In this document: piece by piece, positions 7,479 through 53,960 of the stretch | How positions within the stretch are numbered: position 1 is the first letter of the stretch | How the letters are laid out: each line of letters begins with the position of its first letter | Source: Dicyema japonicum | Lineage: Eukaryota > Animalia > Dicyemida | NCBI GenBank assembly: GCA_011109175.1 | Contig: RDEW01000077.1 | Coordinates: 51,125 to 115,124, forward strand | Direction of reading: 5' to 3' | Length of the DNA: 64,000 nt | Translations under genes and position numbers: made by a program | Notes under the pieces: model-generated | What the model was told of the DNA's origin: nothing | Seen by the model: only the letters and a program-made list of their open reading frames with translations | Databases searched by the model: none

Positions 7479-7510
<32 letters not shown>

Positions 7511-7528: not shown

Positions 7529-7546
7529 ATTCAAATACTTCCATAC

Positions 7547-7556
7547 TTTATATATA
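7547..7556 (-). promoter_or_regulatory. TATA box of the U6 gene (external Pol III promoter)
   Basis: TATATATAAA at about -28 to -19 from the U6 start; conserved in B (24,477-24,486) and C (36,841-36,850). Confidence 0.75.
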
Positions 7557-7727
7557 GAGTGAAATCTATTTTTATTTATAATTAATGTATTTTTAATGTT
7601 AGCTTTAAAATATAATATTCTTAAATAAAAATTAAATTAATTAATTGTATCCTAGATAATTATAAATGAATTTTTTATAAAGTAAAAATATAAATATTTC
7701 AAATAAAACAACAGTTTATTGGAGTAA

Positions 7728-19880: not shown

Positions 19881-22800
19881 GCACGGGGTCAAATATTTAA
19901 CAAATTTTTTATTAAAGAAACTTTTAAAAAGTTTGTAATTTTTAAAATTAACTTTTTATTAATAAATTATTAATAAAACTTTTAGTTAAGAGATATACTA
20001 TTAATACTCTCCGTATTTTCTCAAACTTTTCATCTTCTCCCAATTCCTCGTCACTACAATTAAAATTAAAAACACGTGTTCTGTCTGGAGACGTTATCGT
20101 CAGGTCGTTTTTTCCGTGAGTGTCCTCAAGTTGAAGAGACTGAGTGGCATCCCAAGAATTCCCACTCTTTAGATTAGGACAATTAATTACTGAAGGGTCT
20201 GGAGGTCAACACCATAACGACTTTTTATCATATCGTAAATGTCCTCTTTATTCTCGAATTCCTGAATGTCCTCAATTTCTAAGAATGTCTATAAAAAGAT
20301 TTCAACCATTCAATTCACAAGGCAGGAGAATTCATTCTGTCATAAATTACCAGTGTTACCTGATGACATTCAATCGATAAGAAGAGTTCCTAAAGATCAG
20401 CCTCTCAACTACGGGATATGACTGGTCGCCACCTTTGATGACTTGGACAGCATCTGTCCGACTTCTTTGCTTAGTCTTTCTCCCTCATCTTGGTATATTA
20501 ACCGCCAAACTTTTGCTTCTTTTTTTCAATCGTGTGGGGGTTGAAGATATCTGTTTTTAGAAGTCTTTGGTAAGCATGCTCAAAACCTCCAATCTCGCTT
20601 TGGATCTATCAAAGCCCACACGTTTGTTCGTTACACAAATGGCGTAGCAGACGTAGCTATGGAGGCTCTGAAGGTGAAAACACCATTTACCTCAAATAAG
20701 TGTTGATCACGACCAATTGATGAATATTGAGTCCTTTATAAAGATTATAGACCAGCCGGACTGCATGTGGTGGAGAGATTCGTATCCTCGTCCCAAAAGT
20801 AGAGAAAATAACTATGTCCGAGGATCTTTTCAGCCTTTTTCAATTTCTGGGTAAGATCTGCATCTCTTTTTTTCTTTGGCGCTAATATCACTGGTTAGAG
20901 TAAGTAACTTAATTTACATAAAGGACTGATCCAGACTGGTTTCCTTCTGTATCTTGAGGAAGAAGCAGTCAAAATAGTGGAGACAAGCTCTGTGAAATAC
21001 GTAGAAATACTTGGACCTAAAACTATTTTGATCTCCAACTCAGCTAGAGTCACAAAGTCGTTTATGATTGTAATAACGATCGCAAAAAGTCGCATTGCCA
21101 CATCTAAGTAGTAAAACAACTGACCTTCTATCATTTGAAGAGTCACAAAAGATTCTATAGACTTCTTGTTAACGCCACTGTTTTGGAGGTTGACTTGTTC
21201 TCGCTGCATGATCAATCTTTGTTATTATCTAAAATGAAACCTCGGAGAGCACGTCTTCTTTGAATTTAACCAACGCTCAATTTTCTCCGTCGAATTGTTT
21301 TCTCCCTAACTTGAATTATATTCCCAAACTGGTGAAATTCGATGTTTCAGTTTTATTCATTCCAATACCACTTTGTAGACATTTTTGGGTACAATATATT
21401 TTTGAATTTTATTGGTTACAATTTATTTTAAATAAATATTTATTTTTAAATTAAAAATCTATATTATTTTATTGATGAAGTTTCTGTTTTGCTCGTCTGT
21501 TCCTCCTTCTCTTCCAACTAGAATGGCGTCATGTGATGATGTGATCCACCGCCCAGTGCCAGGCCGGCACATAAAAGGATCATTTGCTTTCCCCCACTCC
21601 ACTGGAGGTGTTTCCACAACTATGGACGTCTTTACTATTTATGCTGATTCCTGATGGACTCTGTTCTATAGAAGTGGAAACTGGATACACTTAATTAGTT
21701 TACTTTAACTTCTTCTCGGTGTATCCGGGCTTAATAAATTAAGTTCGTGAACAATACGAAAATAAATTACTTGTAGATTATATAATGAACACCAAATTTT
21801 GATTATAGGGTATTTGTGATTCCCTTTAACACTTGGAATTTATGGGAGGGGAAAAATAACAATTTCATAGAAACAATTTGCCGTCATGTTATATAAATCA
21901 TATAAACATTGTATGAATAAATTGACTTAAAATTTAAAACGCATCTTTGAGGACAAACACTTAAATTTTGATCAGGTTAAGCCCAAAAAATTACTATTCC
22001 AAAGAAAAAAAATAGTCATGAATTAACATTTTGTTGAAATACTTAAAAAAGACTGCTAGATTTGAATTAACCTTAACAAAAATCTGTTATCAAAGTTATT
22101 CTGTTGAACTAAAAAATCCGATAACAGTGGATGAAACCTCATTTTTAATGGCTTACTCGACACAAGAAAGTCATTATCAGACCCCGACAAATTATTATAC
22201 GAAATTATTAAAATGTAGACCAACTGAGCCGGTTATATTCATCACAAAATTATTCCAATTGAATATCGTTTTAACACTATTTAAATAAATTAATTTTTTA
22301 CCTCTTTGACTTGGGGACCAGTCTCTCGAGGTTTCTAACCTTGCTTCGATATTGCAAATACCATGTTTACCCCATTTTGGCTCACATAAAAATTGTCTTA
22401 TACCTAAAAACTCGATAATGCAGAGAGATTTTATTTACCCCGGTCCCTTCAAGCTAAAAAAACCGTTGGCTAACAAGGAAGTGAAGGAGAAACATAATGC
22501 GGGATATGACACGATATGCGTGTTATAATGTAGGTCACCCAGGGGCGTGCCTAGAGCGGGCCATAGGGGCAGCCGCACAGAACGATGTAGAAGGCAGCAG
22601 ATCCAAGCTATAGAGTTCACGTTATTAAGCTATATTCACATGGAAACGATTAATCGGATGCTGGCAATCTTGAACCCGTGGTTGATTTAAAAGGCATCAG
22701 AAATCAAATGAACACTGAAATCTCCACTGATGGTGATAATCAGAATGCAAATTTGTTGAAAAAGTGGATTCCAGGAGACGCTGATGATTTTATGTTTTTC

Positions 22801-24359
22801 TAACTTTGTGCATTGCATATCTTTATTACTCACAGTTTACGACTCAATTGCTAGCTGTGAACATACTTTTTCAAAGTTAAAAAAATCAAACATATTTAAG
22901 GTCTTCGATGTCAAATCAGCTCTTGTCAAGTTTATCTTTAACATTGAAAAAAAATTCCTGACAAGCGAGGTGAAAGAAGCTGTGATACAGACTTTTGTGA
23001 CCAGCAAAGTAGCGATTGAACATCGAAGTGACTTTTAATAACTGCCGTGCCTCTCTAACTATTTTTGGTTGAGGTGGTGACGTGACTCCTAGCTATGTCT
23101 CAAACATGTTTTATTCGATTGCCTTTTACTGTCGCTTCATTTAATGTTAGAGAACTATCAGCGAGCTCGAAACGGAACACCGTGTGCGATAACAGACCTG
23201 ATGTATGCTATCTTTAAGAGAAAAAATTGCAGGAGGACACGATGAAGTTTATGGAAAATACCAGCTAATGTTACTGCCATCTGAATGCCGACACTGATTT
23301 GCCGTCCGAGTTTTGTTGAGAAAACGAGAGTTCTAATGTGGAGTGTTCATGATCGTATTTCGATTTCTTCAGATCAAACTATAACTGACACGGAATAAAC
23401 TGGTTAACTATTATCAACGTATATGCACTCCATATCGGGAGAGTATAGGTCACCTCTGATGAGTTGGACGAATTTTATGAAAGCCTTTTGAAAGTATGCA
23501 CCGAAATGGACAAAACAACAATCGTGTTCCGGAGACTGGATGCCAAAGAAGCTTTAAGAAAGACCACGAAATATGTATTGGAAGGCACGGATGAGGGTAT
23601 CGAAACTTTTACGGAGAGTCCCTAATTGAGTTCTGCTGGAATTTGGTCTTTATCTTGCAATACGACATTTCAACATAGCAAGGCATAAGAAGACATGGAT
23701 GGCCACAGAAAAACTGAGACGGGCGAGAGATTACAATATACAATCAAAAAGATTATATATTATGTCAGAATGCACATAAAAACTTGCTCGTGGACTCACG
23801 GTCATATGGAGGAGCTGTAACGAATAGTGATCATAAATAACGGTGGCTCAGATGTGCATACGGAAACTATTTGGTAACATTGCCCAGAACAATCGAGTTG
23901 AAGGTAGCATTAAATCAACTATTAACAATTCAACCTTCTCTCTCATCTACATGAAAAGTAGATTTATTGGATCAATGGTTCACGACTGTAAACTTAAATG
24001 GAGGCTAATCAAATTCTGATTGGATTTAATAGTAAACGATCCATAAATTTAGTCCCCAAAAGAATCCCCTACTTAATCTAGAATTGCTGGACCAATCTGT
24101 CAAGAATTTTTCAAAAATACAAAAAAATAAATATATTTGTTATCATGTAAAAACCACCTGTTCATTAAGACAAATTAAAACCAAGCTCATGTATCCTACT
24201 AGAAGAGTGGATGACGAAGGCACAAGAATTGGACTTTAAGTCTGCCTCAGAATGGATGTTTGCGCAATCCATTTAGATGTGGAGAAATGGTAGACGTGTA
24301 AGGTCTTCTGTTGTGTTTATTAATTAATTGAATTATTCCGCAAAAAATGAAATTCAAAG

Positions 24360-24458
24360 AAAAAGTGGAACGCTTCACGATTATGCGTGTCATCCTTGCG
24401 CAGGGGCCATGCTAATCTTCTCTGTATCGTTACAATTTTATTATATGTCCCGTAGGAC
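24360..24458 (-). ncRNA. RNU6: U6 snRNA (copy B; AATTGGAAC changed to AATTGTAAC)
   Basis: Same as copy A except one substitution upstream of the ACAGAGA box. Confidence 0.95.
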
Positions 24459-27400
24459 AGTTAATTACTTCTATACTTTATATATAGAGTGAAATCTATT
24501 TTTATTTATAATTAATGTATTTTTAATGTTAGCTTTAAAATCTAATATTCTTAAATAAAATTTAAATTAATTAATTATATCTTAGATAATTAAAAATGAA
24601 TTTTTTTATAAAGTAAAAATATAAATATTTCAAATAAAACAACAGTTTATTGGAGTAAATATATCCAACAATAGATCTCTCCATAGCTTTCGACTCAATA
24701 AACAGACAGAAACTGATGAATGTGTTTGAGCAAATATTGGATGAATCGTAGGTTAGAATAATCAGACTACTACTTGCAAACACAAGACTATCTGTGAGGA
24801 CAGAAGGAGCAACTTCCCGCAGTTTTAAAACAAAGATTGGGACACCACAGAGTGATTCCTCTCTTCCCTTTACTATTTACCATATATCTTGAATCTGCAC
24901 TCCGCGACCTCCGTAAATGCTATATAGGAGACATCGAAATGACATCTTATGCGGATGATGTGGATTTTGTATCACGGGACGTGACCGCACTCCAACACCT
25001 GCTAGAAAATGCACCTGCGGAGCTTGAGAAATGGTTTCTCAGCGTAAATGTTAACAAAGCTGAAATTACGGAAATCAAAAGAAAAGACGATATTACTCAT
25101 GAAAGATAGAGACGTACTAATAAGCTCGGCTCTCTACTAGGAAACGGTGAAAATGTACTAAGGAGGAAAACACTGGCAAATGCGTCAATGGCTAAACTGA
25201 AGAAAGGATGGCTAAGGGCCAAAGGACTTGGAATTGACATCAGATGCAGGCTTTACAACGCGTTTGTGAAAAATAAAGTATTAAGGAGAAAATTAGCGTT
25301 TATATATTTCAATTAATGAATAAAATTCCATTTTTATTTTTAGTATGCTATTTAATTTAAAATAATTAAAAAATAGTATTATAAAAAGGATAAATTATTT
25401 TTATCTGTATGTGGGGCATTTTTTATTGGGGCAGGGGTTAAACTGTATTTAAAACAGAAAGTTTATATTTTTAGTGACGAAAACAAATTAAATATGTGAA
25501 AATAAATTAAAAGATATATATACAAATAAGATTTTTTTAAATATTATACAGTTTCATTTTTAAATAATGTATATAAGTTAAAAAATAATAATAATAAGTT
25601 ACCCTTTCTTTTTGGGGCACCCCCGCTTTTTGAGGGACATAAATGCCCCAACCGGGGTCCGTCTGTATAAGTAAAAAGTATAAGTAAAAACAATTTTTTA
25701 ACCCCACATGCTAAATCATATCTAGCTACTATGGGAGGCTACTTCGCGACGATAAGTCGGTGGAGTGAAAAATTAGGCCTAAATACATTTTTTTTAATTT
25801 TAAGTAATTTTTTAATTTGTTCATGAATGTCTTACTAAACAGCTAATCTATATATTTCTAGATAACTCACTAACTTCCTAAGTGGACTTACGTGTATGCC
25901 TCAGAGGTCTGTAATTTATCTCACGTCTTTTCTCCAACGGAGTCCCATGAAAATCTTCGTTATCCCCTGCTCTGTTTAACCGTTTTTCTAGCCGTTCTTG
26001 GCCTCTTCAGTCTCAGACCCAAGTCATGCTTCTTGCAATCGAGTATCAGAAGAGCGTGAATATGATAGAATTTTAAATAGCAGTTAGTCATTTTGTCGAA
26101 AAGTCGAGTTGGTGACGTACCTCTTTCGCTGATTATATTTAAGGATAAAAGCCTTTGTCATTGGGGATGATCGACCTGACGGAGTCGGAGACATTGGAAA
26201 ACTAAAATTCTTCACAAAGACAGATGCGTTTAGGATCTAAATTCGAATCTCGTTCTGGCCAATATTGACAGAACTCAAAGGACAACTGTTGAAGCTGCAC
26301 ATATAGGATGATAGTTAATATGATTTTGTTTGATACTAGTATAAACCCATCTAAATATAATAATAACATTAGAGACATCGGATACACAAACTAACTAATC
26401 ATGTGATCACAGCATGCTTAAATAGGGACCTCATTATCGCCCGATGCTCTTCCCTCGACCCCACACATGCACGTATCGGGTGAGTGACTGAATCTTCGCA
26501 GTCATGACGGCGCGTTCCATGATTCATTCATAGCATGGCTTCTAGAGACATTGGAGAAAGGACAATCACACAAGAAAAAAAAAGTGAAGATCATTTCTTG
26601 GTTTTACGATTAGTTAAAATTAATTGTTTTTTACTTAAATAAAGTGTGTGTCCTGCCTATGCGGAGCTATAAATACTATGGTTCTCGTGAAAAGGCTTTA
26701 TTATTATTAACAATTCAGAATATCTTATATTTTGTAGGAATTATTAGTTAACAAGCATGTCTTCTACTGAAATTCGGAACTCATTGGAAGCTCTTTGAAC
26801 ATGTATTGAGAATGTACCTGAAAGCCCCAGCTAACATGGACATAAAAGATTTTTTTCTTACAAATTTCATATTATTTCGAAAGTTCATGAATCACCCGAA
26901 CAAACTTCAATAGATTAGAGTGTTTATCATTCAACAATTTGAGTGCTTTTAATTGACAGTGCTTACTGATTCGAAATAAATATCTCGATTGCATCAGCAT
27001 CAAACATTTAAGTTTAATGGTCTATTTCACATGTGTTTGGTTGCCATGGTGGATTATGGCTTCAATGAGAATAACCATTTCTGAGAATATAAAATTCTCA
27101 GTTTAAGACTAGCTGCGAGATATCGGGACAGTTAAAGAACTTATTGTTGAAGATCCTAATTAGAATTCTTACTTATCCTCAGGATTTAAAACTAACAAAG
27201 AATCTATGTGTTTGTAATGTAAAGGTTGGGGAACTTTGATGGGACATAGTCTTTACAACAATGGAATTTTATCTTTAAGTTTTAGATTTTGATTAAATTT
27301 AGTATTTTAGAAAGTTGTTGTATTTTAAAATTTCAGCAAAATTATTTAAAAGACATTATTCGGTAGAATATTTGTGTCAATTTCGACGACTTCACAAGGA

Positions 27401-32810: not shown

Positions 32811-35800
32811 GAGCCTACAAGAGGATAACGGTAGACAGTTGGAAAGAATCTTCCAGTGGAGTGGGGGAGAGAAAATGATCCTTTTTCATACCAAAATATA
32901 ACTGGTAAGACAAGTCCATCCGGAACCAAATTAAAAGGTAAAAGAAGTCCATTCCTTGCAATTGTGGAAACCCCTCCAGTGGAGTGGGGAGATCAAATGA
33001 TTTTTTTCGTGCCAACCTGACATTCCGATAAATTATTCTGTGGTTCATTCGGATAGATTGCCTCCAAGAATCTTTTTACTAAAATTCCATTTTCATCAAA
33101 AATTTAAGTTATTTTTCAGAACATTTTATTCTTAGAAAACAAGTCGGGCTCTTGGGTTCGAATCACAGACTAACCATCAATGATAATACTTGAAGCTTTT
33201 CCGGTCCTAGACTTCCAGTGAGCATCGAAGATATGTGACCTCCGGTGAGCAGACGTACAGCATTAGCAGCTGGAAGACTGAGGACGGCAAGCCTCCTACA
33301 GGATAGGGAGGTCGGGGCTAGTAACTAATGAAACTGGAAATGACATTGTATAACTTCTCCCAAAATCAAACAGAAGCTAATTTTACTGTCGAGGAGGTAT
33401 GTCTCTAAGGTTATCTAAACCTCCATATGTGAGATAAAAATTAAATAACAAGAGGAGGTGAAAAAAATGGTTGTTGAAATTTACAAAAGTCAATTCAAAA
33501 AAAGGTTTAACCAAAGCCAGATGTCACCAATGTTTCTTGGAATCAATGGAGACGCTTGGCATAGCGATTCTTAAAAATGTGGACGCAGAATCGACCATCG
33601 TATGTTGGAGTGGAATATTCGCTAGGGTTCAGCGCTCAGCCCCCTGCTATTCAACATTCTCATGGCTATGATGCCGGAATAGAAATTTTAAGGATTACGC
33701 AAAAATCTCGTATGTGTCCAGCCATGAAAATAGTCGACAACAGGAAATAGCGTGTCTCTAAGGGTTTGACAATCTCAGCAAAAAACTAATCCTCCGCTGA
33801 TCTCTAACATTCGTAGATTCAATCGACAATGCTGCGACTTGAGGAACTCCATAGATGCCGTACACTTACACTACCTAGGAGAGTTAATTTGAAGAAAAGG
33901 GACTTTATGGAAGACATAGTTTTAGAAAAGGAGGGTTTTCCAAGCACATCTATGTCTGTAAAAGTTAAAAATTGGATGAGATTTTTTGTCTCTTCGGACA
34001 AGTTGTCCTGCACTGTCCCTGCACTTTTTTACGTGACACCATTATATTTGCATACACATTAACTGGGCGGCACAGTGTAATGAATGCCGGTAAAAATGAC
34101 TGATGGCTCTTAGTTCGAACCTTGCGAATGAAAGTTCACGCATCTACGATGCTTTGGATTTGACGAGTGACGCCTTATTAATGAACATCTCACTGCGGAA
34201 CTGAATCGTCTAACAAAAAAGACCACAACCAACAAAAAGAATAAAGAAGTGAAGTGCATTCCTTGGTTTTCCCTCGTTGATTAGTCTGATAATTCTTCTT
34301 TACTTAAATAAAGTATGTGTTTTGCCTGGGAGGGATATAGCTACTATAGCTCTTCGTAAAATGCAGTATTATTATACACATTAATTATTTTCATTTGTTT
34401 TCTGCTAGTCCATAATTTGATTACGCAATCATTGTCCTATTTATATGCATTTTCAGGCTTTGAGGAATGTCAAATCCAATGCCATAATAGTTTAACTCTG
34501 GTTGTAGTACAGTAAATTTGTACTCACATAATCCTCAACAAGCTTAGTTCGAGACTTTTGGAGAGAAGCAATTTATAGTTAATAATGACTTTTTCCATTT
34601 TAGAATAGAGACTCCTTATAGTCGTTTTTATGACTGAAATTAAATGTAATTAGCAAAAAGTTTTTTAGTCATTATCATTTTTTAAACAGGGAATATTATT
34701 TTTTTCTAAATAAAATATTTTTAAAACATTAATTTTAATCAACAAATAAATTAATTTAGACAATAATTAGGACGACAGAATGGCGAAGGCGTTACCTCTG
34801 ATAAACGCCATTTCTAGCCTCTGCCTCAACCCAGAGTCCCTCTTTGCTTAGTCTTTCTCCCTCATCTTGGTAAATCAACCGCCAACTTTTGCTTCTTTTT
34901 TTCAATCGTGTGGGGGTTGAAGATATCTGTCTTCAGAAGTCTTTGGTAAGCATGCTCAAAACCTCCAAATCTCGCTTTGGATCTATCAAAGCCCACACGT
35001 TTGTTCGTTACACAAATGGCGTAGCAGACGTAGCTATGGAGGCTCTGAAGGTGAAAACCCCATTTACCCTCAAATAAATGTTAATCACGACCAATTGATG
35101 AATATTGAGTCCTTTATATAGATTATATAAGCAAAGACAGCCGGACTGCATGTGGTGGAGAGGTTCGTATCCTCGTCTCAAAAGTAGAGGAAAATAACTA
35201 TGTCCGAGGATCTTTTCAAAGTTAAAAAAAATCAAACATATTTAAGGTCTTCGATGTCAAATCAGCTCTTGTCAAGTTTATCTTTAACATTGAAAAGAAA
35301 TTCCTGACAAGCGAGGTGAAAGAAGCTGTGACAGGCTTTTGTTACCAGCAAAGTAGCGATTGAACATCGAAGTGACTTTTAATAACTGCCGTGTCTCTCT
35401 AATTATTTTTTGGTTGAGGTGGTGACGTGCCTTTTTAGCTATGTCCCAAACATGTTTGATTCGATTGCCTTTTACTGTCGCTTCATTTAATGTTAGAGAA
35501 CTATCAGCGAGCTCGAAACGGAACACCGTGTGCGATAACTAGACCGTTACGGAGTTGATGTATGCTATCTTTATATGACAAAAGGTGCAGGAGGACACGA
35601 TGAAGTTTATGGAAAATACCAGCTAATGTTACTGCCATCTGAATGCCGACACTGATTTGCCGTCCGAGTTTTGTTGAGAAAACGAGAGTTCTAATTGTGG
35701 AGTGTTCATGATCGTATTGCGATTTCTCAGCTCAAACTAAAACTGACACGGAATAAACTGTTAACTATTATCAACGTATATGCACTCCATACTGGGAGAG

Positions 35801-36724
35801 TATTGGTCACCTCTGATGAGTTGGACGAATTTTATGAAAGCCTTTTGAAAGTATGCACCGAACTGGACAAAACAACAATCGTGTTCCTGGCGGAAGACTG
35901 GAGTGCCAAAGAAGCTTTAAGAAAGACCACGAAATATGTGTTGGAAGGCATGGATGAGGGTATCGAAACTTTTCCGGAGAGTCCCTAATTGAGTTCTGCC
36001 TGGAATTTGGTCTTTATCTGTGCAATACGACATTTCAACATTTAGCAAGGCATAAGAAGACATGGAATGGCCACAGAAAAAACCGAGACGGGCGAGAGAT
36101 TACAATATACAATCAAAAAAAATTATATATTATGTCAGAATGCACATAAAAACTTGCTCGTGGACTCACGGTCATATGGAGGAGCTGTAACGAATAGTGA
36201 TCATAAAATAACGGTGGCTCGGATGTGCATACGGAAACTATTTGGTAACATTGCCCAGAACAATCGAGTTGAAAGTAGCATTAAATCAACTATTAACAAT
36301 TCAACCTTCTCTCTCATCTAAGTGAAAAGTAGATTTATTGGATCAATGATTCACGACTGTAAATTTAAGTGGAGACTAATCAAATTGGATTTAATAGTAA
36401 ACGATCCATAAATTTAGTCCCCAAAAGAATCCCCCACTTAATCTAGAATTGTTGGACCAATCTGTCAAGAATTTTTCAAAAATACAAAAAAATAAATATA
36501 TTTGTTATCATGTAAAAACCACCTGTTCATTAAGACAAATTAAAGCCAAGCTCATGTATCCTACTAGAAGAGTGGATGACGAAGGCACAAGAATTGGACT
36601 TTAAGTCTGCCTCAGAATGGATGTTTGCGCAATCCATTTAGATGTGGAGAAATGGTAGACGTGTAAGGTCTTCTGTTGTGATTATTAATAAATTGAATTA
36701 TTCCGCAAAAAATGAAATTCAAAG

Positions 36725-36772
36725 AAAAAGTGGAACGCTTCACGAATTTGCATGTCATCCTTGCGCAGGGCC

Positions 36773-36804
<32 letters not shown>

Positions 36805-36822
36805 TAATATGTCCCGTAGGAC
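36725..36822 (-). ncRNA. RNU6: U6 snRNA (copy C; variant)
   Basis: ACAGAGA and AGC intact. GGCCCCTG is shortened to GGCCCTG and the 3' part reads GACATGCAAATTCGTG. Confidence 0.92.
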
Positions 36823-37034
36823 ATTCAAATACTTCCATACTTTATATATAGAGTGAAATCTATTTTTATTTATAATTAATGTATTTTTAATGTTAGCTTT
36901 AAAATATAATATTCTTAAATAAAAATTAAATTAATTAATTGTATCCTAGATAATTATAAATGAATTTTTTATAAAGTAAAAATATAAATATTTCAAATAA
37001 AACAACAGTTTATTGGAGTAAATATATCCAACAA

Positions 37035-37186
37035 GGACACTCACACAAAAAAAAAAAAAGAAGTGAAGATCATTCCTTGTTCTACGATTAGTTAAAATTA
37101 ACTGTTCTTTACTTAAATAAAGTGTGTGTCCTGCCTATGCGGAGCTATAAAATACTATGGCTCTCGTGAAAAGGCTTTATTATTAT
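37035..37186 (+). mobile_element. 152-bp retroposon insertion private to copy C, 12-bp TSD
   Basis: Flanked by TATATCCAACAA at 37,023-37,034 and 37,187-37,198. The empty site (single TATATCCAACAA) is seen in copies A (~7,728) and B (~24,660). Confidence 0.92.
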
Positions 37187-37978
37187 TATATCCAACAATA
37201 GATCTCTTCATAGCTTTCGACTCAATAAACAGACAGAAACTGATGAATGTGTTTGAGCAAATATTGGATGAATCGTCGGTTAGAATAATCAGACTACTAC
37301 TTGCGAACACAAGACTATCTGTGAGGACAGAAGGAGCAACTTTCCCGCAGTTTTAAAACAAGATTGGGACACCACAGGGTGATTCCTCTCTTCCCTTTAC
37401 TATTCACCATATATCTTGAATCTGCACTCCGGCGACCTCCGTAAATGCTATATAGGAGACATCGAAATGACATCTTATGCGGATGATGTGGATTTTGTAT
37501 CACGGGACGTGACCGCACTCCAACACCTGCTAGAAAATGCACCTGCGGAGCTTGAGAAATGGTTTCTCAGCGTAAATGTTAACAAAGCTGAAATTACGGA
37601 AATCAAAAGAAAAGACGATATTACTCATGAAAGATGGAGACGTACTAATAAGCTCGGCTCTTTAACTAGGAAACGGTGAAAATGTACTAAGGAGGAAAAC
37701 AGTGGCAATGCGTCAATGGCTAAACTGAAGAAAGGATGGCTAAGGGCCAAAGGACTTGGAATTGACATCAGATGCAGGCTTTACAACGCGTTTGTGAAAA
37801 ATCAGTATTGAGGAGAAAATTAGCGTTTATATATTTCAATTAATAAATAAAATAACTTTTTTATTTTTAGTATGCTACTTAATTTTAAAAAATTAAAAAA
37901 TAGTATTGAAAAAAAGATAAATTATTTTACTCTGTATGTGGGGCATTTTTTATTGGGGCAGGGGTTGAACTGTATTTA

Positions 37979-38176
37979 TTACTATAATTATTATTATTAT
38001 TATTTAAGCCAAAGAAACACCGTCTTAACCCAATAACTAATATTCAGGTGATCCCGGCATCTCTCAATAATCGGGCCATTTTTTCTCGATGCTCCGACTG
38101 TGATCCCACGCATTTTCTATACGGACGGGGGTCTTTTTCCTTTTCTCTTCTGAAATTGCCTCCAGTTGCCTCTATG
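37979..38176 (-). mobile_element. Retroposon 3' end with a (TAA)n tail, inserted only in copy C
   Basis: Absent at the orthologous sites of A (~8,520) and B (~25,450); long TAA run and GGGATCAC motif. Confidence 0.7.
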
Positions 38177-38719
38177 ATTTAATAACAGAAAGTTTATATT
38201 TTTAGTGACGAAAACAAATTAAATACGTAGTAATAAATTAAAAGATATATACACAAATTAGATTTGTTTAAATATTATACTGTTTCATTTTTAAATAATG
38301 TATAAAGTTAAAAAAATAATAATAAGTTACCCTTACTTTTTGGGGCACCCCCGCTTTTTGAGGCACATAAATCTCAAACCCTATGTCCGACTGTTTAAGT
38401 AAAAAGTATAAGTAAAATCAATTTTTTATCCCCACATGATAAATCATATATAGCTACTATGGGAGACTACTTCACGACGATAAGTCGGTGGAGAGAAAAA
38501 TTAGGCCTAAATACATTTTTTTTTAAATTTAAGTAATTTTTTAATGTGTTCATGAATGTCTTACTAAACAGCTAATCTATATATTTCCTGGATATATTAC
38601 TAACTTCCTAAGTGGACACGTGTATGTCCCAGAGGTCTGTAATTTATCTCACGTCTTTTCTCCAACGGAGTCCCTTGAGGATCTTCGTTATCCCCTGCTC
38701 TGTTTACCCGTTTTTCTAG

Positions 38720-39150
38720 CCGTTCTCTCGACTCTTGAATCCGATAATGATGTTTTCTCTTATGCAAAAGATATTACTTTGTCTTCACGAGATAGGAGAA
38801 TCCAGAATGCCAGAGAAAGAATACAAATTAACCTTGACCGGCTCAACCCCTGGATAATAGAGAACCGGCTCATAGTCAATGCAGAAAAGTCGACCACGTT
38901 CTTTTTATTTCAAACAAAAGATTGGAAAAGAAGACAGTCACCTTGAAATTAAACGAGGTCGACATCTCTTTCAACAGATGTCAAAGGATCTTGGGTGTAC
39001 ACTTCATATGCATCTTTGTCTATCACCACACGTAAAAAATATTTTTTGAAGTATAAAAAAAACTGAACGCAGAAAAAGGTTTATCGGGAATATGAATATA
39101 ACCTGCTTTAGGACGTTACGTGTGTTGATACATATTTTCAGAAAAATTTG
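38720..39150 (+). mobile_element. LINE RT fragment present only in copy C
   Basis: SYAKDITLSSRD...ERIQINLDRLNPWIIENRLIVNAEKST interrupts CCGTTCT|TGGCCTC, which is contiguous in A and B. Confidence 0.65.
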
Positions 39151-42100
39151 GCCTCTTCAGTCTCAGACCCAAGTCATGTTCATAGCAAACCGAGTACCAG
39201 AAGAGCGTGAATACTGAGGTCCACTCGCTATGAATAGAATTTTAAATAGCAGTTAGTAATCTTGTCGAAAAGTTGAGTTGGTGACGTACCTCTTTCGCTG
39301 ATTATATTTAAGGATAAAAGCCTTTGTCATTGGGGATGATCGACCTGACGGAGTCGGAGACATTGGAAAACTAAAATTCTTCACAAGATAGATGCGTTTA
39401 GGATCTAAATTCGAGTCTCGTTCCGGCCAGAATTGACAGAACTCAAAGGAATCATCTGTTTCAGCTGCACACATTGGGATGATAGTTAATATGATTTTGT
39501 TTGATACTAGTATAAACCCTACTAAATATAATAATAACACCAGAGACTACGAATATACAAACTAACTAATCACGTGATCACAGCACGCTCTAATAGGGAC
39601 CTCATTTTGGCCCGATGCTCTTCCCTCGACCCCACACAAGCACGTATCGGCCGAGGGACTGGATCTTCGCAGTCATGACGGCGCGTTCCATGATTCATTC
39701 ATATCATGGCTTCTAAAGACATTGGAGAAAGGACAATCACACAAGAAAAAAAAGTGAAGATCATTCCTTGGTTCTACGATTAGTTAAAATTAATTGTTTT
39801 TTACTTAAATAAAGTGTGTGTCCTGCCTATGCGGAGCTATAAATACTATGGCTCTCGTGAAAAAGCTTTATTATTATTAACAATTCAGAATATCTTATAT
39901 TTTATGTGAATTATTATTCAACAAGCATGTTTTCTATTGAAATTCGGAACTCATTAAATTCTCTTTGAACATGTATTGAGAATGTATTTGGAATTCTCAG
40001 CTAACATGGACATAAAAGATTTTTCTCTACATATTTCCTATTATCTTGGAAGTTCATAGATCACCCGATCAAACTTTAATAGATTAGAGTGTTAATCATT
40101 CAACAATTCGAGTGTTTCTAATTTACAGTGCTTACTGATTAGAAATAAATATCTCGATCGCATCAGCATCAACCATGTAAGTTTAATGGTCAATTTCACA
40201 ATTGTTTGGTTACCATAGTGGATTAATGGCTTCAATGAGAATAACCATTTCTAAGAATATAAAATTCTCAGTTAAAGACTAGCTGCGATATATCGGGACA
40301 GTTAAAAAACTTCATTGTTGAAGATCCTAATTGGAATCCTTAATTATCCGCAGGGATTTAAAACTAATAAAGAATCTATGTATTGGGATGTAAGGTTGAA
40401 AGAACCTTGATGCAACATAGTCTTTACAACAATGTAATTTTATTTTTAAGTTTTAGATTTTGATTAAATTTAGTATTTTAGAAAGTTGTTGTATTTTAAA
40501 ATTTCAGCAAAATTATTTAAAAGACATTATCGGTAGAATATTTGTGTCAATTTCACGACTTCAAAACGAAGGAGTGTCCAATGAAAAAGTCCTTTGAAAT
40601 AAGAATTCTATGTGGAACTTGCTATTTTGAATGGAATTGTATTTTCTTGTTTAAAACAAGGATTAAGGAACAAATTTGGAAAACAAATTGAGTTTTGTCA
40701 CAACACATCAGGTCAGCGAATCTTTTGAACTTCGAACTGTGAAGTGTTAATCTTTCGACTTTTAGTAAAATCTAAACATGCTCGTGTAATTAGATTTTGC
40801 ATGACGTGAGACATCAGAAACGAGAAATCACGAATGCTGAAAATTTGAAAATGAGGTACCTTCGTCAACTATCGTACAACTACTTGTTCAACAAAAGCGG
40901 CCAACAACGAGGAAGACGACTTCAATTACTGAGTTTGAGTGACGGTGATGCTTTTAATTGTGGTTAACTTCTTTTTTGACGGAAATGAGATTTTCATTTC
41001 TCACTTCTGAAAAACACAGAATAGTTTCTTTATCGTGAGTGTGAGAGATGCATTTCTTTTAGTTCTAATGGATTACTTTTAGAGCTAAAGGGGTAATTTA
41101 ACTTCAAAAATTAGGGACATGTAAAATTGAGCCTAAACCAACAACCATTCGAAGTGTCAAAAATAACCTTAGGAGGCAAGAATCCAACAGGAGACAACAA
41201 ATATGAATCCACGACTACTGTAGAGCCTACGACGCACAGTAAAACCTCTACACTGAGTAACAGAATACTAATAATAATCGCGAAAATAATACTGAATCGG
41301 GTTATACTGTAATTATGTTATTTAGACAGAACAGCATGAAAGTTGTATATTGCAAAATATCCTAATTCGCCTTATTGGTTCAGTTACTATTTACATTTTT
41401 TTAAATTAAAATAGCAATTTAAAAAAATTTAAAATATAAAATAAATATTTAAGAATTTACTCATTCTTATTTTAAACGAAAAGCGAAGAATCAAGTGAGG
41501 CGACATGGTCCGTGCAAGATCTACTAAACCTGATGGGTCTTTGGTTCCTGAAGAACCGTCTGAATGTATCATCAGAAAAGTCACATGTAATGACGTTTAC
41601 CTCAGCACAAAAAAGAATTATACAAACAATGTGTTTTACCTAGAATCGAATACGCCTGTGCTGCATGGATTACCCCCTTATCAATTTCGGCACAGAGCAA
41701 GCTGGAGGTTTTACAAAATCGATGTCTCAAGATTCTATTGAGATCGTCGAAAAAGACGTCCACCTCGTTACTGCGAAGAACACTAATCGTCCCCCAATCA
41801 TGAAATACCTTAAGGAACGTCGCCGTGACTTTCTCAAAATGGCAAAAACCATCCCCTCAGATCGCACATCAGACTATATATGGACGCCTGTCCGAGATAT
41901 GAGAAGAAACCTTTCCCACTGTGGAGATTAATTAGGACTTCAAAACTAACCGCGGGAAAAGGACTGGTATGGACACCGAGATCACTTAATTAGGCGATAA
42001 CTTTCGTAATTTCGGGTTAATAAAATAATAATTAATAAATTGAACGAAAAGCGGAAAATAAATACTGTTTACTTAGTAAATGTGATTGAATAATAACTCT

Positions 42101-46795: not shown

Positions 46796-47690
46796 ATAAT
46801 TCCGTTAAATTACCGCGATCGCCTTATGTCTTGGATAAATTACCGCGTTAATTAATTATTTGTTACTTTTAAAATTGTGTTATAAAAAATATTAATTTTG
46901 TCAATTTGATTAAATTTGAATAATTATGCCAATGAATGTTCGCTGTTGGAAAATCAAAGTTGAAGCGGCGGAAGTACGATGACTTTCCCGTTATGTAAAA
47001 TTTTTCCCGGAAACCTCTGGGAACCTCATACTACGATTTTTCGAAAAACTCGGAAAACTTATCTCATCCCGCTCTGCGAACCTTCGAGAACGATGCTGTG
47101 ATCTAACAAATTTCTTTCGCAAGACCAGATTCTGCATTTGCCTTCGATTGCTGCGATCCTCCAATTCTGATTTTGCTTCGATTTTGTTTATATTAAACGC
47201 AAAAAAACCTTAAAGTTATTCAAGTTTAAGGGCAGAAAGTAGGGTAATGACATGTTCTTGTTAATATTGGTTTGTTCTCTCGTAAAATTTCCATTGGTCT
47301 GAACACCAAACACTTACTCACACAATTTAAAGACTTCCAGAATCTCATTTTACATTTGACCTTATTAGAATTTCAGTGGAGTTTTAATTCCAACACTTTT
47401 AACCAGCTGATGCCTACGACAGGTTCAAATACTGTTGTTGCTAGTGATCAAGTAAACTATGATTCTATTCAAATAAATCAGCGTGCACTGAGTCTAATGG
47501 ATGCCTCTTTATGCAGGAATCGTCTAACCTGGACAGGGAAACGGAAAAATTAAAATCTATTTGTTCAAGAGTATAATTTGTCTAATATTATGTCACGGCC
47601 CGTACGTGGTATCTGCCCACACATAGTCAATGATTTTAATTATTTAAAAAAATAATTATATATTTTTGTTCATTATTTGATAAGGATTAC

Positions 47691-49402
47691 TTTATTTAAC
47701 CAACAATAAAAAGTTAATATTTAATAATCAACAACCTTCCTCGCCTGCCTGTTCGCCAGCCTCCTCAGGCAGGTTCGATTCTGGTTGCTGAAACAACTCC
47801 GAGAGCGCCTTGTAAAATTGAACCCTCTGCCCATAAGGCAACTCCGGGCTCTGCCTCCTATACTCTAGTGTCAGGCTCTCTAGAGTCCGCTTTAATACAG
47901 TGGACTGTAGATAGGCCTGGAGCTTCCTATCTACCCCCAACTGCTTCAGATAACCCTTGTGGTACTTTGTTGCAATTCCTTCCCACGTCATTACTATTGG
48001 AATAACGAGGACCTTGCAACCAAGCATCTGCCCCATCTCGTTTGCAAGCAAGTCATACTTTCTTTTTTTCTCCACCTCCACAGTCTGCAAACCTCTATGA
48101 TAAGGATTTGACCAGACTCCTTATTGTGTACCACAATGTACGGTTTATTGTGCTTGATTAGCACCGAGATACGGATAACACTGTCTACCTTAATTTGAAC
48201 TCTGGTGTTCTCTACTACAGATTGCATCTTATGAGTCCGCAACTTTCTGGTGTGGCGAATATCATACTTATTGCATAGTTGAAGATGAAGACTCCTTACT
48301 ACCTCGTTGTGCCTCCACACATAGTCGTGGCAGAGCATGGATCCACATCGAGTGGCTAAATGATCAACCGACATGCTCTTTGACTTACAATGGGGACATG
48401 TATTTGTTGATCGACCCCAAAAAATATTGCGGTCTTGCATATACGCGTACAGCGCCTCCGATCGAGGTGAGTTGTCACCGTATTTTAACCATATTGTCTA
48501 CGACTTAAGGTCGACATGTGGGTTGTCCAATGCTCTGAAGAGGACCTTATGAAGGCTTTTTAAGTTGATCTTTTCCATCAAATTATTATATTGTAATTCG
48601 ATCAACGCCTTCACATTTACTAGCCCACCATCATCAACATCATAATTAGCAGACAAAAAAGGTCTGATAGTGCCTAAATAAGTTGCCCGTGTTTTCTTGG
48701 TCGTTATTATGGCGTGCTTCCTAACAGACACACTTGACCCAACTATCAGGGTGTCATGCGTTCGCATTAGGATACATTCACTTAGTTGGACTACTTCACT
48801 CAGTCCACAGCCGAATTTATTACGGGGTAAATATAGTCTTTCCTTATTGGCTGCCAGCACATGGACATGGTTCTCTCTGAGTACTCCACGGATCATAACA
48901 TTCATCTCATCAATCTCTTTAGAAGCGAGACAGCATACTCATTAATGCTAGGAACAAATTCCTTCATTTAGAGAGGTCTTACACAATAACGCTTCTCTTT
49001 TACGGATGCCTTCAGTAATTTGTCGCTTTGTCTCAGGCATCATAAGGGACTTTGGAGTTTCGGTAACACCCAGATACTTATATCCTTCGTGTTCCTCTAG
49101 GACTCTCACTAACTCGCTACATGCTTGCGTGTTAGTCGCAGACTTTGAATAATTCAAATTTAGTCCTATAATCTCAAAGAATTCCCTGGCAGAGACCCCA
49201 TGGAGTAGAGCTCCTCGTGTTCGAGCATGCAGTTACAGTCATCGATAAAAAAAGGTGATTTGTACTGAAAAAAACTCTCACAATGAACTGGTATTTGCTC
49301 AAACCAGTCATTGAGGCGGCGACTCAATGGCTCCAAACAGAAACAAAGAGCAGCGGAGACATGCTATCCCCTGAAGGATCCCCTCTTGAGTTTTACCTCG
49401 CC
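47691..49402 (-). mobile_element. 5'-truncated RLE-type non-LTR retrotransposon (R4/NeSL group) with a 10-bp TSD
   Basis: TSD TAAGGATTAC at 47,681-47,690 and 49,403-49,412. Motifs KRGILQGDSMSPLL, YKYLGV, LYLPR..FGCGL, QDRNIFW..CPHC...DHLATRC...RHNEVV, KP.I, EKKRKYDLLA. Carries stops and frameshifts. Confidence 0.93.
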
Positions 49403-49714
49403 TAAGGATTACAAATATATATTTTTTTTATTTTAAAATAATCACTTTTTTGAGTTTTTTGGAAAAAATAAAATTGAAGAATGGGTACAGTATTAAAATA
49501 CTTAGTTTTTAATATATAAATTGTTTTTTACTAATAATTAATTTGAATTATTTAAAATTATATAGCACGCTTTTGTCAACACACGACTGATTGTTTTTGT
49601 TGTTCGGTTGTTTCTTCACGATTTGAAAATAATTAAGGAATTGGTACTTTTGGCATTGTTCATTTGTTTAATTTTAGATCTAATATTCAAAAAAAATTTC
49701 ATTAATTCATTTTA

Positions 49715-50936
49715 GAGCCTTATTTCGTGAAGCATGTATTGCAAAAGTACCAAAGAATTTAAAAATTGACTTGTTCCTTTCAGATCTGGCAATATCCGAT
49801 AAGAGGCGTTATAAAAGGTTGCCAGTAGTTTTAAATTTGAAAACGATGTGCCATGTATAATTGCTCATTTGTAGGAAACAAATTATTAATTACGATTTTT
49901 TGCAAACGACGAACTAGAGCTAAAACGATTAACTATTGAGGTATATTCAATCATTAAGTTTTTAGTCTGAACACAACGAATCCCACATGGGCAGGAACAG
50001 ACTTTTTTGTATTTTGAAAAAGCTTTACTACAATGTGACAAAGAATGAAGTTGGAGATATTGTAAAGCGGTGTCCATTTTGTGTGTCTAAGAGGCTTTTG
50101 GAAACAAAACCTCCGATAACATCAATTGTGGCAAAATAGTCACGCGACAGATTTATAGCCGATCTAATTGATTTGCACGTTATTCTGACAAAAACTGGGG
50201 TTATTCATGCGTATTTTTTTATTAATTTCTGTAGCTTTTGACAGTTGTTGACTGTTTCAGCAAATTTAAGATGGTCGATACTCTCTACTCCAAAAATTCA
50301 AAGGATGTAGTTGAAACTTTTCAAAAAAATTTTTATATATGGCCCTCGTTATTATTACACACGGAAAAGAAATTTAAAAATAATTTGATGACCGACATGT
50401 TAATGGAGTTACGGGTCCAAGTAAAGAGGTAAAATAGAAATTATAAATTTAGATTCAACCAATTAGTAAAAAATGGATTTCTCCCCACATCCGCTTTCCA
50501 GTGGAGAGTTTGGGAGTTATGTTCTTCATTTAAAAAAATTGTTTTTGATTACAACAATTCGAGACAACGAAACAAATTCCATTCTTCATATGCAATTCCG
50601 GAGGATTTGTCGAATTTTCTGTTTTATGAAGTGGATGAAGCAAGGGAAGAGGCACGAATATATACGCAGGTAGCAGCACAAAAGATGATTGAGAAAAGAA
50701 GATGGAGAAACGACGAAGAAACTTCAAAAGTTGGTGACAAGGTCCTTAAAATAGGAGATCATGGCAAAAATCCAGCTTATCGTACAATGGACACTGATCG
50801 AATGAGCTTGTACGATGAGCTTGACTGTACAATCTATGAAGTAACCAAAATTGAGGGATTTAATTCTTTTATCAACAACAATGAGGATGAAAAAATTCAC
50901 AGGTCACGAGCTAAAGTGATCGAAAACGCTAAATAA
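49715..50936 (+). pseudogene. Integrase/transposase of the outer element (HHCC zinc finger + DDE core + C-terminal domain), intron-containing and degenerate
   Basis: Removing GT-AG introns 49,941-49,965, 50,211-50,234 and 50,429-50,452 gives TIE|SEHNESHMGRNRL...KRCPFC, RFIADLIDL...GYSC|LLTVVDCFSKF and QVKR|FNQLVKKWIS, then KVGDKVL. Confidence 0.85.
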
Positions 50937-50974
50937 TTTAATTAATAAATTATGTTTAATAAATTACACTTTTG

Positions 50975-51130
50975 AGGGTTCAAAGGTTTAAGTTAGGGTT
51001 AGTGTTTATGGTTAATGTTTAGGGTTTTTAGTTAGGGTTAATGTTTAGGGTTAGTATTAACGATTTTTGGTAAAGTTAGTGTTTAGCGGTTTTGGTTAGG
51101 ATTTAGGGTTTTTGAATTAGTGTTTAGAGT
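50975..51130 (+). repeat. Degenerate telomere-like (TTAGGG) tract inside the outer transposon
   Basis: Exact TTAGGG at 50,993, 51,019, 51,032, 51,045 and 51,103, plus TTAGTG, TTAGCG, TTAGGA and TTAGAG variants. Confidence 0.75.
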
Positions 51131-51466
51131 TAAACATTCAGCTATATGGATTAAAGAACATTGCTTAAATTTAATATTTTTGTCTAGAGCTATGCTCTTG
51201 TTATTTTTATTTGTTATTTAAATAATTAGATTTTATCTATTTTATATTTTTTAAACAAAATAAATTTTTTTTAGCATGAGGATTACCATTGCTTTGTGAT
51301 ATTTGGTGGTTAATTTTTAATTTATCTCTCAATTTTTGCGTTCTACAGAATTTTTTATATAGAGGTCAACTTATTGGATATATTTTGTCACATGGGCGGC
51401 GCGTAACGCATGGGCAGCCTGTTACATTTTTTCGACCTTGAAAAGGTCTTTTGATTATCCGACATT

Positions 51467-51573
51467 ATTATTATTATTACCCCCAGGATCACTGGGTCAA
51501 AAAGAAAGAAATAAAAGTTCTCATCTAACTAAGTGATCCCAGACCGACAAAGGTGAGGATGAGTCCCTCTTTG
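51467..51573 (-). mobile_element. 107-bp retroposon with a (TAA)n tail and a 14-bp TSD
   Basis: TSD GATTATCCGACATT at 51,453-51,466 and 51,574-51,587. A longer relative lies at ~53,712-53,960. Confidence 0.9.
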
Positions 51574-51716
51574 GATTATCCGACATTTAATTTTATATAT
51601 CCGATTTATATCGTGATTTAATCCTGTTAAATTAGTTTTTTATTCATAAATGTTATGATTATAAAGATTTTATTTTTTTATAGCGGTAAACCTAGATTTC
51701 TAGCGTGATTTATAGC

Positions 51717-52438
51717 ATGGAAGATTATTTTGTTGCAATGGCTTCTTACAAGGGTTTTGTGAAAGATTGCGTTGAATATCAAACTTTAAAAGATGCTTTG
51801 CATGATAAATTTCCCGAAAATCTTCCGAGGCACCGAAAATATAGGCTTGTAAAGAAGATAGAGAATTTTTCTATTATCAATGACAGGTATTGTAAATTTT
51901 CAATAATTTTAGACTGTATCTTAAATCAACTGATCCCAAGTTAATCATATCCCTCGATAATGAAACCGAAATGGAGCATGTTGCGAAATCGTTGCACGAG
52001 TTTTCACACGGAGGAGTCAATAAAATTGAGTATGAATGTCGACAAAGATACTTCACTGTAGAGAATGAGATTATCAGAAAAAGTCATTCGAAATTGTGAA
52101 GTCTGTAAATTTTCGCGTCCTTTAAAAGTTCGTGATTTTTTTATAATTGGAGATATAAATCACCATGTGTTTGCTTCTTCTCCAAATGAACGTTTTCAGG
52201 TAGATCTAATAGACCTGAAAAAATTTTCAACATTAAATGAAAATTTCAAATGGATTTTAACGGTCATTGACATATATAGTAGGCTGGTTTTTTTTTAATT
52301 TATAGATTCGCTTTTGTACGACCACTCTATAATAAGTCTGGTAAAGAAGTATGTGAAAACTTAAGATCTTTGTTCCGCCTGAATGGGCCATGTAAATTTC
52401 TTCAGTCGGACAATGGATCTGAATTTAAAAATCAATAA
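51717..52438 (+). pseudogene. Integrase of the inner element, intron-containing and C-terminally truncated
   Basis: Introns 51,887-51,912 (GT-AG) and 52,283-52,305 (GC-AG) give NDR|LYLK...SLHEFSHGG...RNCEVC...FQVDLIDL...WILTVIDIYSR|FAFVRPL...LQSDNGSEFKNQ*. One +1 shift lies in an A-run at ~52,080. Confidence 0.88.
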
Positions 52439-53009
52439 ATAAGTATTATCCAGTTGCAGAAATAATTAATATTTTATCGAATAATCGCGTGGAGGTAGTT
52501 TTAAATAGTTTAATTTGATAGATAAAAAATTCGAAAGGAGAAATATCGGCTGTATTAATGAGTAGACTAAAAAAAGTTACTTAAATTTAATTTTTGTGGT
52601 TAATAAATCATTTATAAATTAATTGAAGTTAATTGAAGTTAATCTTGGTTCAAGGTTAATGTAACAGGCTGCCCATAGGTAACGCTTGGCCCATGTGACA
52701 TATTTAAGTTGATTCTGCTATAGAAGATTTTGTAATTTTACTAGCCTCCACCATGTGTGGGCGGAGGCCACGTACGGGCCGTGACATATTATAATTGGGG
52801 CAAACATTTTTTAACTAAAAAATTGAAAAAATTTAACTTTAAAAAGTTAAGTTTATTAACTTATAAACCAAATTTTTCAACCTTAAAATTAAAAAATTTA
52901 ACTTTACTTTTTTCTCAATTTGAACTTGTAAAATATAGATACGAACCAATAAAAGAAAACTTATTTTTTAAAGACTATTTATTGGAAATGGACATTACGT
53001 AATTTTCCA

Positions 53010-53711: not shown

Positions 53712-53960
53712 TATTATTACCTCCCAGGATCACTGGGTCAAAGAGAAAGAAATAAAAGTTCTCATCTAACTAAGTGATCCCAGACCGACAAAGGTGAGAA
53801 CGAGTCCGGCGGGGTCGAGAATCCTGAACAGCTCTTCTCATTGGACATGGTATCGGCTCAAAATTTTTGTATGATTGTAGATAATTCGATAGTATTTGGA
53901 ATAGAGGGCAGCTCGGTAGAATAGCCTCTTTTATAGCAGCTTTCTAATTTAGTTAAAGAT
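53712..53960 (-). mobile_element. Retroposon 3' end, same family as 51,467-51,573
   Basis: Near-identical ~90 bp including the GGATCACT/AGTGATCC inverted repeat, extended further 5'. Confidence 0.75.

Follow-up and report, generated by a model that had tools for sequence, protein, structure and literature searches.

Two nested Ginger2/TDD-like transposons in a probable fossil stack of mobile elements from the dicyemid Dicyema japonicum

One locus of the dicyemid Dicyema japonicum raises the question of what kinds of mobile DNA make up a 5.2-kb composite, in which order they came together, and whether the composite could still move. The locus lies at 47591-52786 of a stretch of 64,000 nucleotides (nt) of contig RDEW01000077.1; this whole stretch is called the window, and coordinates refer to it unless another contig is named. 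Dicyemids are parasites of octopus kidneys. D. japonicum lives in Octopus sinensis, and its genome, of 36.7% GC and 49% repeats, is rich in long interspersed nuclear elements (LINEs) (PMC6736024). The window has a GC content of 36%, to which octopus genomes also come close, is eukaryotic and LINE-rich, is full of LINE fragments and carries three U6 genes. Our answer is that the composite is probably (with a probability of about 0.8) a stack of four dead mobile elements, in which two Ginger2/TDD-like transposons are nested one inside the other. The DNA itself shows the nesting order, as well as ends, duplications and gene remnants.

The region was read directly and scanned for repeats. All four layers of mobile elements were found, by direct reading, repeat scan, searches with the terminal arms and blastn, at the coordinates listed here (HMM, hidden Markov model; RT, reverse transcriptase; TRF, Tandem Repeats Finder).

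47586-47590, no strand: outer target-site duplication TATTA, left copy, identical to 52787-52791
47591-52786, plus: outer Ginger2/TDD-like element, 5196 bp with inserts, 2156 bp of its own sequence
47591-47627, plus: outer left inverted terminal repeat, TGTCACGG..., arms 89% complementary
47683-47692, no strand: LINE target-site duplication TAAGGATTAC, left copy, identical to 49403-49412
47693-49402, minus: LINE fragment, 5'-truncated, from the RT tail to the 3' end, 1710 bp, on the strand opposite to the integrase genes
49403-49412, no strand: LINE target-site duplication TAAGGATTAC, right copy, by direct reading
49966-50936, plus: outer integrase gene remnant (detectable bounds), family-HMM pieces at E=3.5e-12, 5e-12 and 6e-5
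51381-51385, no strand: inner target-site duplication TATTT, left copy, identical to 52701-52705
51386-52700, plus: inner Ginger2/TDD-like element, an internally deleted copy, 1315 bp with its insert, 1194 bp without
51467-51573, minus: short retroposed fragment, 5'-truncated, tail (AAT)n, from the repeat scan and TRF ((ATT)5)
51696-52435, plus: inner integrase gene remnant, family-HMM pieces at E=2.4e-5, 3.9e-11, 3.1e-25 and 2.4e-17
52701-52705, no strand: inner target-site duplication TATTT, right copy, by direct reading
52750-52786, minus: outer right inverted terminal repeat, from the repeat scan and arm search
52787-52791, no strand: outer target-site duplication TATTA, right copy, by direct reading

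The nested anatomy agrees closely with a sequence-only reading of the same DNA. That reading had given the outer element 34-bp terminal inverted repeats and the target-site duplication TATTA; the arms are 34-37 nt long, with 89% identity and disagreement at several positions, and TATTA stands on both flanks. The arms begin TGTCACGGCCCGTACGTGG, so that the element ends read TGTCA...TGACA, and this 19-mer occurs at two places only in the window, where shuffled sequences are expected to give 0 matches. A LINE had been placed about 100 bp inside the outer left end with a 10-bp duplication, and the measured distance is 102 bp, with the duplication identical on both sides. The second integrase element, said to end 86 bp inside the outer right end, is there with arms of 43 nt (51386-51428 and 52658-52700, 86% identity), which begin TGTCACATGGGC and again give ends of TGTCA...TGACA, and with the duplication TATTT; shuffles expect 0 chance matches of the inner-end sequence in the window. 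Once the inserts are subtracted, the outer element retains 2156 bp and the inner one 1194 bp, in keeping with the earlier estimates of about 2.15 and 1.19 kb. The 107-bp retroposon with a 14-bp duplication needs a small amendment: the insert is present, but the 14 bp are the perfect core of a 19/20 direct repeat (51447-51466 and 51568-51587), and the length of the insert is accordingly about 101-107 bp. It had also been claimed that every insert spares the integrase reading frames. None does lie within the detectable coding remnants, although the frames are broken by mutation anyway. All three secondary insertions sit in AT-rich non-coding flanks of their carriers, a position that requires no selection because a preference for AT-rich targets accounts for it. 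Nesting of mobile DNA as seen here is commonplace in repeat-rich genomes.

The gene remnants inside the two inverted-repeat elements were identified through a protein family. With a 78-amino-acid (aa) piece of the inner gene as query, HMMER returned 150 hits; among them are many proteins of 400-460 aa that are matched at about residues 106-170. Eighteen hits were aligned in full length and a family profile HMM was built from the alignment. Its invariant columns include H79, H83, C112, C115, D142, D203 and E239 (numbering of the first sequence), and D203 and E239 are 36 alignment positions apart, a DD35E-like spacing. Pfam finds the rve domain in 18 of the 18 relatives and Integrase_H2C2 in 12, and no RT, RNase H, protease, OTU or Ulp1 domain in any of these close relatives. 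Against PDB, the family profile matches the integrase of prototype foamy virus (PFV; E=1e-26) and, with E=8e-24, the integrase region of Ty3 Gag-Pol. The pieces from the window line up colinearly on the profile, the best of them at E=3e-25, and these colinear matches make the integrase reading firm at the family level: what both elements encode is the remains of a stand-alone integrase, about 430 aa in length.

The pieces of the inner gene span profile positions 2-211, and everything beyond about 211 is missing except for a weak trace of the C-terminal tail. The HHCC motif and the two aspartates are kept, the third catalytic residue having been deleted with the last third of the gene, and the reading frame changes three times. 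The pieces are 47-64% identical to proteins of Dictyocoela. Pfam gives sub-threshold matches of consecutive pieces to consecutive parts of the rve model (E=0.029 and 0.006). The outer pieces cover profile positions about 78-225 and 334-430, and their best relatives reach 35-44% identity; for the C-terminal piece, a word-based protein search found no match. HHCC and the first D are kept in the outer gene, an E stands in the column of the second D, and the E column is unaligned; the gene contains 2 in-frame stops and at least 1 frame change, and sequence is lacking around the third catalytic residue. Integrase_H2C2 is matched below threshold by single window pieces, at E=0.002 (a piece of the outer gene) and 0.026. 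Thus the first D of the triad is found in both copies, the second D in the inner copy only and the E in neither, by decay or deletion. Judged by these remnants, the outer gene is dead, with two of three catalytic residues lost, and so is the inner gene, as part of an internally deleted copy. Between the outer and the inner element the relationship is only a distant one.

Among named relatives, the nearest are microsporidian, namely Dictyocoela roeselum (KAG0418124.1), D. muelleri, Nosema granulosis and Pseudoloma neurophilia. Their proteins, of 360-458 aa, consist of an integrase only, and are labelled "Gag-Pol polyprotein" (Dictyocoela, Nosema granulosis) or "transposable element" (Pseudoloma neurophilia) in databases. 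Two complete elements among the relatives confirm the type of element. The one in D. muelleri (SDVU01000034.1, 2283-4098) is 1.8 kb long with an uninterrupted gene of 450 aa; its inverted ends of 213 nt are 98% identical, have the tips TGTCGCGCGCGC (TGTCGCG) and are flanked by the duplication TATTA. Its gene is annotated "Gag-Pol polyprotein", a misleading name for an integrase-only cut-and-paste element. The other, on a Logan contig, is 2.2 kb long with GC-rich ends of about 45 nt that begin TGTGGCGCG, and its duplication fits either TTAA (4 bp) or an imperfect 5 bp. Five loci of a relative from soil metagenomes, which were compared for element borders, turned out to be one locus.

Which superfamily do these elements belong to? 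Ginger2 elements have TGTNR termini, inverted repeats, AT-rich targets and an HHCC plus DDE integrase without GPY/F, and their duplications measure 4 bp in metazoan Ginger2 and 5 bp in TDD-4/5 (PMC2836005). Both window elements have TGTNR...YNACA inverted repeats, and both duplications, TATTA and TATTT, are AT-rich and 5 bp long. Neither element has a gag, protease, RT, RNase H or other gene of its own. After the microsporidian genes, the highest scores of named proteins belong to KRBA2-like proteins ("KRAB-A domain-containing protein 2-like"), which come from molluscs, insects, a hemichordate, corals and Rhizophagus; they score 145-197 bits against the family profile (E about 1e-37 to 1e-52), whereas Ty3 and PFV reach 88-97 bits. 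KRBA2 owes its integrase core to Ginger2 transposons (PMC3575427). Taken together, the termini, the duplications, the HHCC plus DDE integrase and the KRBA2-like scores support the filing of the window elements as compact Ginger2/TDD-like transposons. This bears out most of what had been proposed from the letters alone: TGT...ACA ends with short duplications and an HHCC plus DDE-type integrase, where the duplications prove to be 5 bp and AT-rich and the remnants occur in both elements; a Ginger2-like assignment, where the relatives have rve and H2C2 without RT, RNase H or protease and KRBA2-like proteins come next; and very compact size, where 1.8-2.2 kb compares with 2.75-6.7 kb in the 2010 table of autonomous Ginger2 elements, whose ends are 45-297 nt long (PMC2836005). 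Only the additional description as IS481-related is too loose a label, for IS481EU, IS3EU and GingerRoot have no HHCC (PMC10045372).

Could the elements nevertheless belong to another integrase superfamily, IS481EU, IS3EU/GingerRoot or Ginger1? TGT..ACA ends shorter than 50 nt are also found in IS481EU (PMC10045372), and an OTU domain, a feature of Ginger1 transposases, is present in some of the profile hits. But HHCC is invariant in the family, and IS481EU, IS3EU, GingerRoot and Polinton do without it and make duplications of other lengths (PMC10045372; PMC6839031). The AT-rich duplications of 5 bp depart from the 6 bp of IS3EU and GingerRoot and from the roughly 4, 15 or 25 bp of IS481EU (PMC10045372, PMC6839031), as well as from the 4-bp CCGG/CCGT duplication of Ginger1. 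The remaining marks of Ginger1 are GPY/F, YPYY and OTU/Ulp1; OTU and Ulp1 are missing in the 18 close relatives, and inspection of the C-terminal part of their alignment shows no invariant or near-invariant G-P-Y/F and no invariant G-P pair. KRBA2-like proteins reach 197 bits and OTU-bearing hits only about 150. We therefore regard another superfamily as improbable. More improbable still, indeed hardly credible, is that the integrase remnants come from long terminal repeat (LTR) retrotransposons, with the inverted ends a coincidence or the tips of LTRs. The closest proteins do bear the name "Gag-Pol polyprotein", and TG..CA tips with 5-bp duplications would suit LTR elements too. However, the relatives are proteins of 400-460 aa with HHCC and rve domains only, they lie on contigs of 1.5-2.5 kb, and the two complete ones are bounded by inverted, not direct, repeats; in the window, the sole RT-related part among the four layers belongs to the separately inserted LINE, a minus-strand fragment between duplications of its own, and neither transposon contains gag, protease, RT or RNase H.

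Several observations weigh against a Ginger2/TDD reading of the two elements and of their ends. Single integrase pieces stay below the Pfam cut-offs and PDB phmmer returned nothing for them, so that the integrase call rests on the family profile. The Ginger2/TDD placement is an indirect one, by scores and published descriptions. The ends, of 34-43 nt, are short beside the published ones, which mostly measure 45-297 nt. No second copy of either end is present in the window. The outer end had 0 matches in metagenome contigs, and the inner-end pattern had 120 single matches in metagenomes, none of which extends past the pattern or is accompanied by a related gene, as expected of chance.

The two transposons had further been described as intron-containing. 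We examined each junction between adjacent profile-matching pieces, allowing 19 possible placements of the segment. At the first two junctions of the inner gene there is a surplus of exactly 26 nt and 23 nt without any gap in the profile, and intron-like ends occur at one of the 19 placements in each (GTA..AG for the 26 nt, GC..AG for the 23 nt); the third junction is a 1-nt frameshift. The junctions of the outer gene comprise a plain in-frame stop, a surplus of 23 nt without canonical ends at that length, and a deficit of sequence. Introns of D. japonicum have only "GTa" and "AG" as splice signals, are mostly shorter than 30 bp and have been analysed in classes of 20-27 nt; among animals, such introns are known only from dicyemids and myxobolid myxozoans (PMC13644364). 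The two inner segments are therefore candidate ultrashort introns, and the pattern is suggestive, if not decisive; we think this origin rather likely. The description as intron-containing thus holds, as a fit, for two segments of the inner gene; no intron is demonstrable in the outer gene, and none is seen at these positions in the fetched relatives.

The competing explanation, that the segments of 23-26 nt are ordinary insertions acquired during decay and that this lineage has transposase genes without introns here, just as in the fetched relatives, seems to us somewhat doubtful, though it deserves serious weight. Relatives fetched from Logan, JGI and NCBI have genes that are uninterrupted or carry plain in-frame stops, and none has an intron at the window positions, a point that counts against former introns. 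Moreover, one of the segments begins with GC and not GT, the 23-nt surplus of the outer gene has no canonical ends at that length, and a GT/GC..AG placement at one of 19 positions is expected by chance in about 8% of junctions, as calculated from dinucleotide frequencies. It would nonetheless be unusual for decay to leave, in a stretch of about 740 bp, two insertions that are each 23 nt or longer and gapless against the profile; their lengths fall within the 20-27-nt intron classes of D. japonicum (PMC13644364), and the 26-nt GTA..AG segment resembles the 27-nt introns of a Rab-like gene on a contig described below.

Two other accounts of the broken frames were rejected. An intron common to relatives that end at the same residue is contradicted by two of those relatives, L007 and L008, which have plain in-frame stops. 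These two are unrelated decayed copies, and each has its in-frame stop no more than a few codons from one conserved stretch that follows the first catalytic D; their predicted proteins consequently end at almost the same residue, which imitated a common intron. A variant genetic code, be it that of ciliates or another, was rejected as the source of the in-frame stops on account of the metazoan-type LINEs in the window and of the frameshifts among the breaks.

The largest insert, near the left end of the outer element, is the LINE fragment. Its gene is broken by at least 4 in-frame stops and 2 frame changes. LINEs of the restriction-like-endonuclease type have a CCHC motif followed by a PD-(D/E)xK endonuclease, C-terminal to the RT. 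The window fragment has a long region after the RT part, with a C-x2-C-x8-H-x4-C motif, and no poly(A) tail, and a relative of it (P0002) shows a CCHC-type motif and then a PD...E...K nuclease-like motif, both read by eye. Going by the features of R2, the fragment may be of this R2-like type. Pfam and PDB phmmer searches with the fragment gave no match, which tells against this assignment and leaves it to the motifs read by eye. The sole relatives in a word search were two proteins labelled Octopus sinensis, with 64-73% aa identity, and the contigs carrying the relatives also hold an innexin gene. A microsporidian origin of the window was rejected on these grounds and because LINE fragments fill the 64 kb. 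One contig labelled Octopus sinensis (GCA_006345805.1 VCDQ01008732.1) bears a relative of the nested LINE, is gene-dense with 36% GC, and contains at 1807-3206 on the minus strand a Rab-like gene in which two 27-nt GTA..AG introns lie between conserved exons. It looks like dicyemid DNA that was assembled and annotated within the octopus genome. Elsewhere in the window, one piece of open reading frame has the pattern RPDG...WD.T...KRRKY, which is reminiscent of the restriction-like endonuclease tail of another LINE family.

17203-17541, minus: open reading frame piece with this pattern

The short retroposed fragment within the inner element has a counterpart about 2 kb downstream, outside the composite.

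53712-53807, minus: second copy of the short retroposon, blastn 96% identity over 96 nt

This second copy is longer at the 5' side than the nested one. The short fragment is therefore a copy of a dispersed repeated element, and the nested copy is 5'-truncated.

How might the composite have come about? A Ginger2/TDD-type transposon of about 2.2 kb, with GC-rich TGTCAC ends and one integrase gene, would have entered an AT-rich site and duplicated TATTA. By analogy with known DDE integrases, insertion would involve staggered cuts 5 bp apart followed by gap repair. An R2-like LINE would then have been copied near the left end by target-primed reverse transcription, leaving a 5'-truncated fragment and a 10-bp duplication. 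A distantly related member of the same transposon lineage would have inserted near the right end, duplicating TATTT, and this inner, internally deleted element would later have gained the 5'-truncated retroposed fragment of about 100 bp with its (AAT)n tail. The truncations, the tail and the duplications point to target-primed reverse transcription as the probable route of arrival for both the LINE and the short fragment.

The sequence-only reading had also raised the possibility that the 5.2-kb composite is a functioning mobile unit that a transposase from another copy could move as a whole. The outer ends and their duplication are preserved and the arms are still 89% identical, as such a unit would need. 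Against this, the arms differ at those several positions, neither the window nor the collections searched, in which exact look-ups of 11 window open reading frames had no match, yielded the composite or its ends a second time, and an intact transposase gene from the outer family turned up nowhere; the proteins closest to the outer pieces are only 35-44% identical to them. A mobile composite is therefore very improbable. Both integrase genes have decayed and neither element is autonomous; because both transposase genes are inactive, the composite is best described as a fossil.

Some further observations concern the composition of the elements and other parts of the window. The inverted ends at 47591-47627 and 51386-51428 are GC-rich (57-58%) compared with element bodies of 30-32% GC; in the outer element, the values are 57% for the ends and 30% for its own sequence. 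GC-rich ends are also seen in both complete relatives that were fetched. The heptamer CTGCCCA of the outer end is the reverse complement of TGGGCAG of the inner end. In the 3' subterminal part of the outer element there is a tandem array, which could represent subterminal binding repeats or a captured telomere-like tract. The three U6 small nuclear RNA matches are of full length (98-108 bits), and each sits in a repeat unit of at least 4 kb that is present in three copies with 91-97% identity. The unit also has pieces of LINE endonuclease and RT open reading frames on the opposite strand, and is either a segmental triplication or a repeat family carrying a U6 copy.

50987-51091, plus: tandem 13-nt repeats with a TTAGGG core, from TRF and the repeat scan
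7429-7528, minus: U6, in the unit at about 5510-9500
24359-24458, minus: U6, in the unit at 22449-26414
36724-36822, minus: U6, in the unit at 35213-39585

It is conceivable, though we consider it unlikely, that a distinct, very compact Ginger2/TDD-like branch of 1.8-2.2 kb with 5-bp TATTA-type duplications circulates among parasites and hosts (crustacean microsporidia, the dicyemid and AT-rich eukaryotes in sequencing runs), and that its transposase gene gained introns of 23-26 nt once it had entered a genome with ultrashort introns. If true, a mobile element would have spread horizontally and then acquired introns in the shortest intron regime of animals. That microsporidian relatives are nearest while the host is a dicyemid is a pattern that points to the question of horizontal transfer. 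Should the segments of 23-26 nt be introns, a transposon gene would here bear the mark of an intron regime that is the shortest known among animals. A compact branch of integrase transposons with 5-bp duplications is in any case documented, and the "Gag-Pol polyprotein" labels of its members invite confusion with retrotransposon fragments. As a by-product, an octopus assembly seems to include contigs of dicyemid DNA.

Comparison with known systems places the parts of the composite as follows. With Ginger2/TDD, the window elements have in common TGTNR...ACA ends, a single HHCC plus DDE gene, AT-rich targets, the 5-bp duplication of TDD-4/5 and the lack of RT and RNase H. They differ in size, with about 2.2 kb of own sequence in the window and 1.8-2.2 kb in the relatives compared with 2.75-6.7 kb, and their duplications are longer by one base pair than those of metazoan Ginger2. 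The integrase-only elements of microsporidia share the architecture of about 430-460 aa, and the D. muelleri element also shares TGTC tips, GC-rich ends and TATTA. However, its inverted ends of 213 nt and its uninterrupted gene are different, the outer element of the window is far from these proteins (35-44%), and their hosts are not animals but fungus-related intracellular parasites of amphipods. KRBA2-like proteins and the integrase cores of KRBA2 and SCAND3 have HHCC and the rve core in common with the window family, whereas the mammalian KRBA2 and SCAND3 are domesticated host genes without inverted ends, and only a third to a half of the query aligns. The integrases of PFV (3OYI/3L2Q) and Ty3 (7Q5B) are of the same fold family, judged by sequence, and share the zinc-binding N-terminal domain and the catalytic core by profile, Ty3 also the C-terminal part; unlike these, the window protein stands alone between inverted repeats, is not part of pol and involves no reverse transcription step. 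The nested LINE fragment, finally, has a CCHC motif, a post-RT region and no poly(A) in common with R2-like LINEs, as well as PD...E...K in its relative, but the PD motif of the window copy lacks its D and no site specificity is evident.

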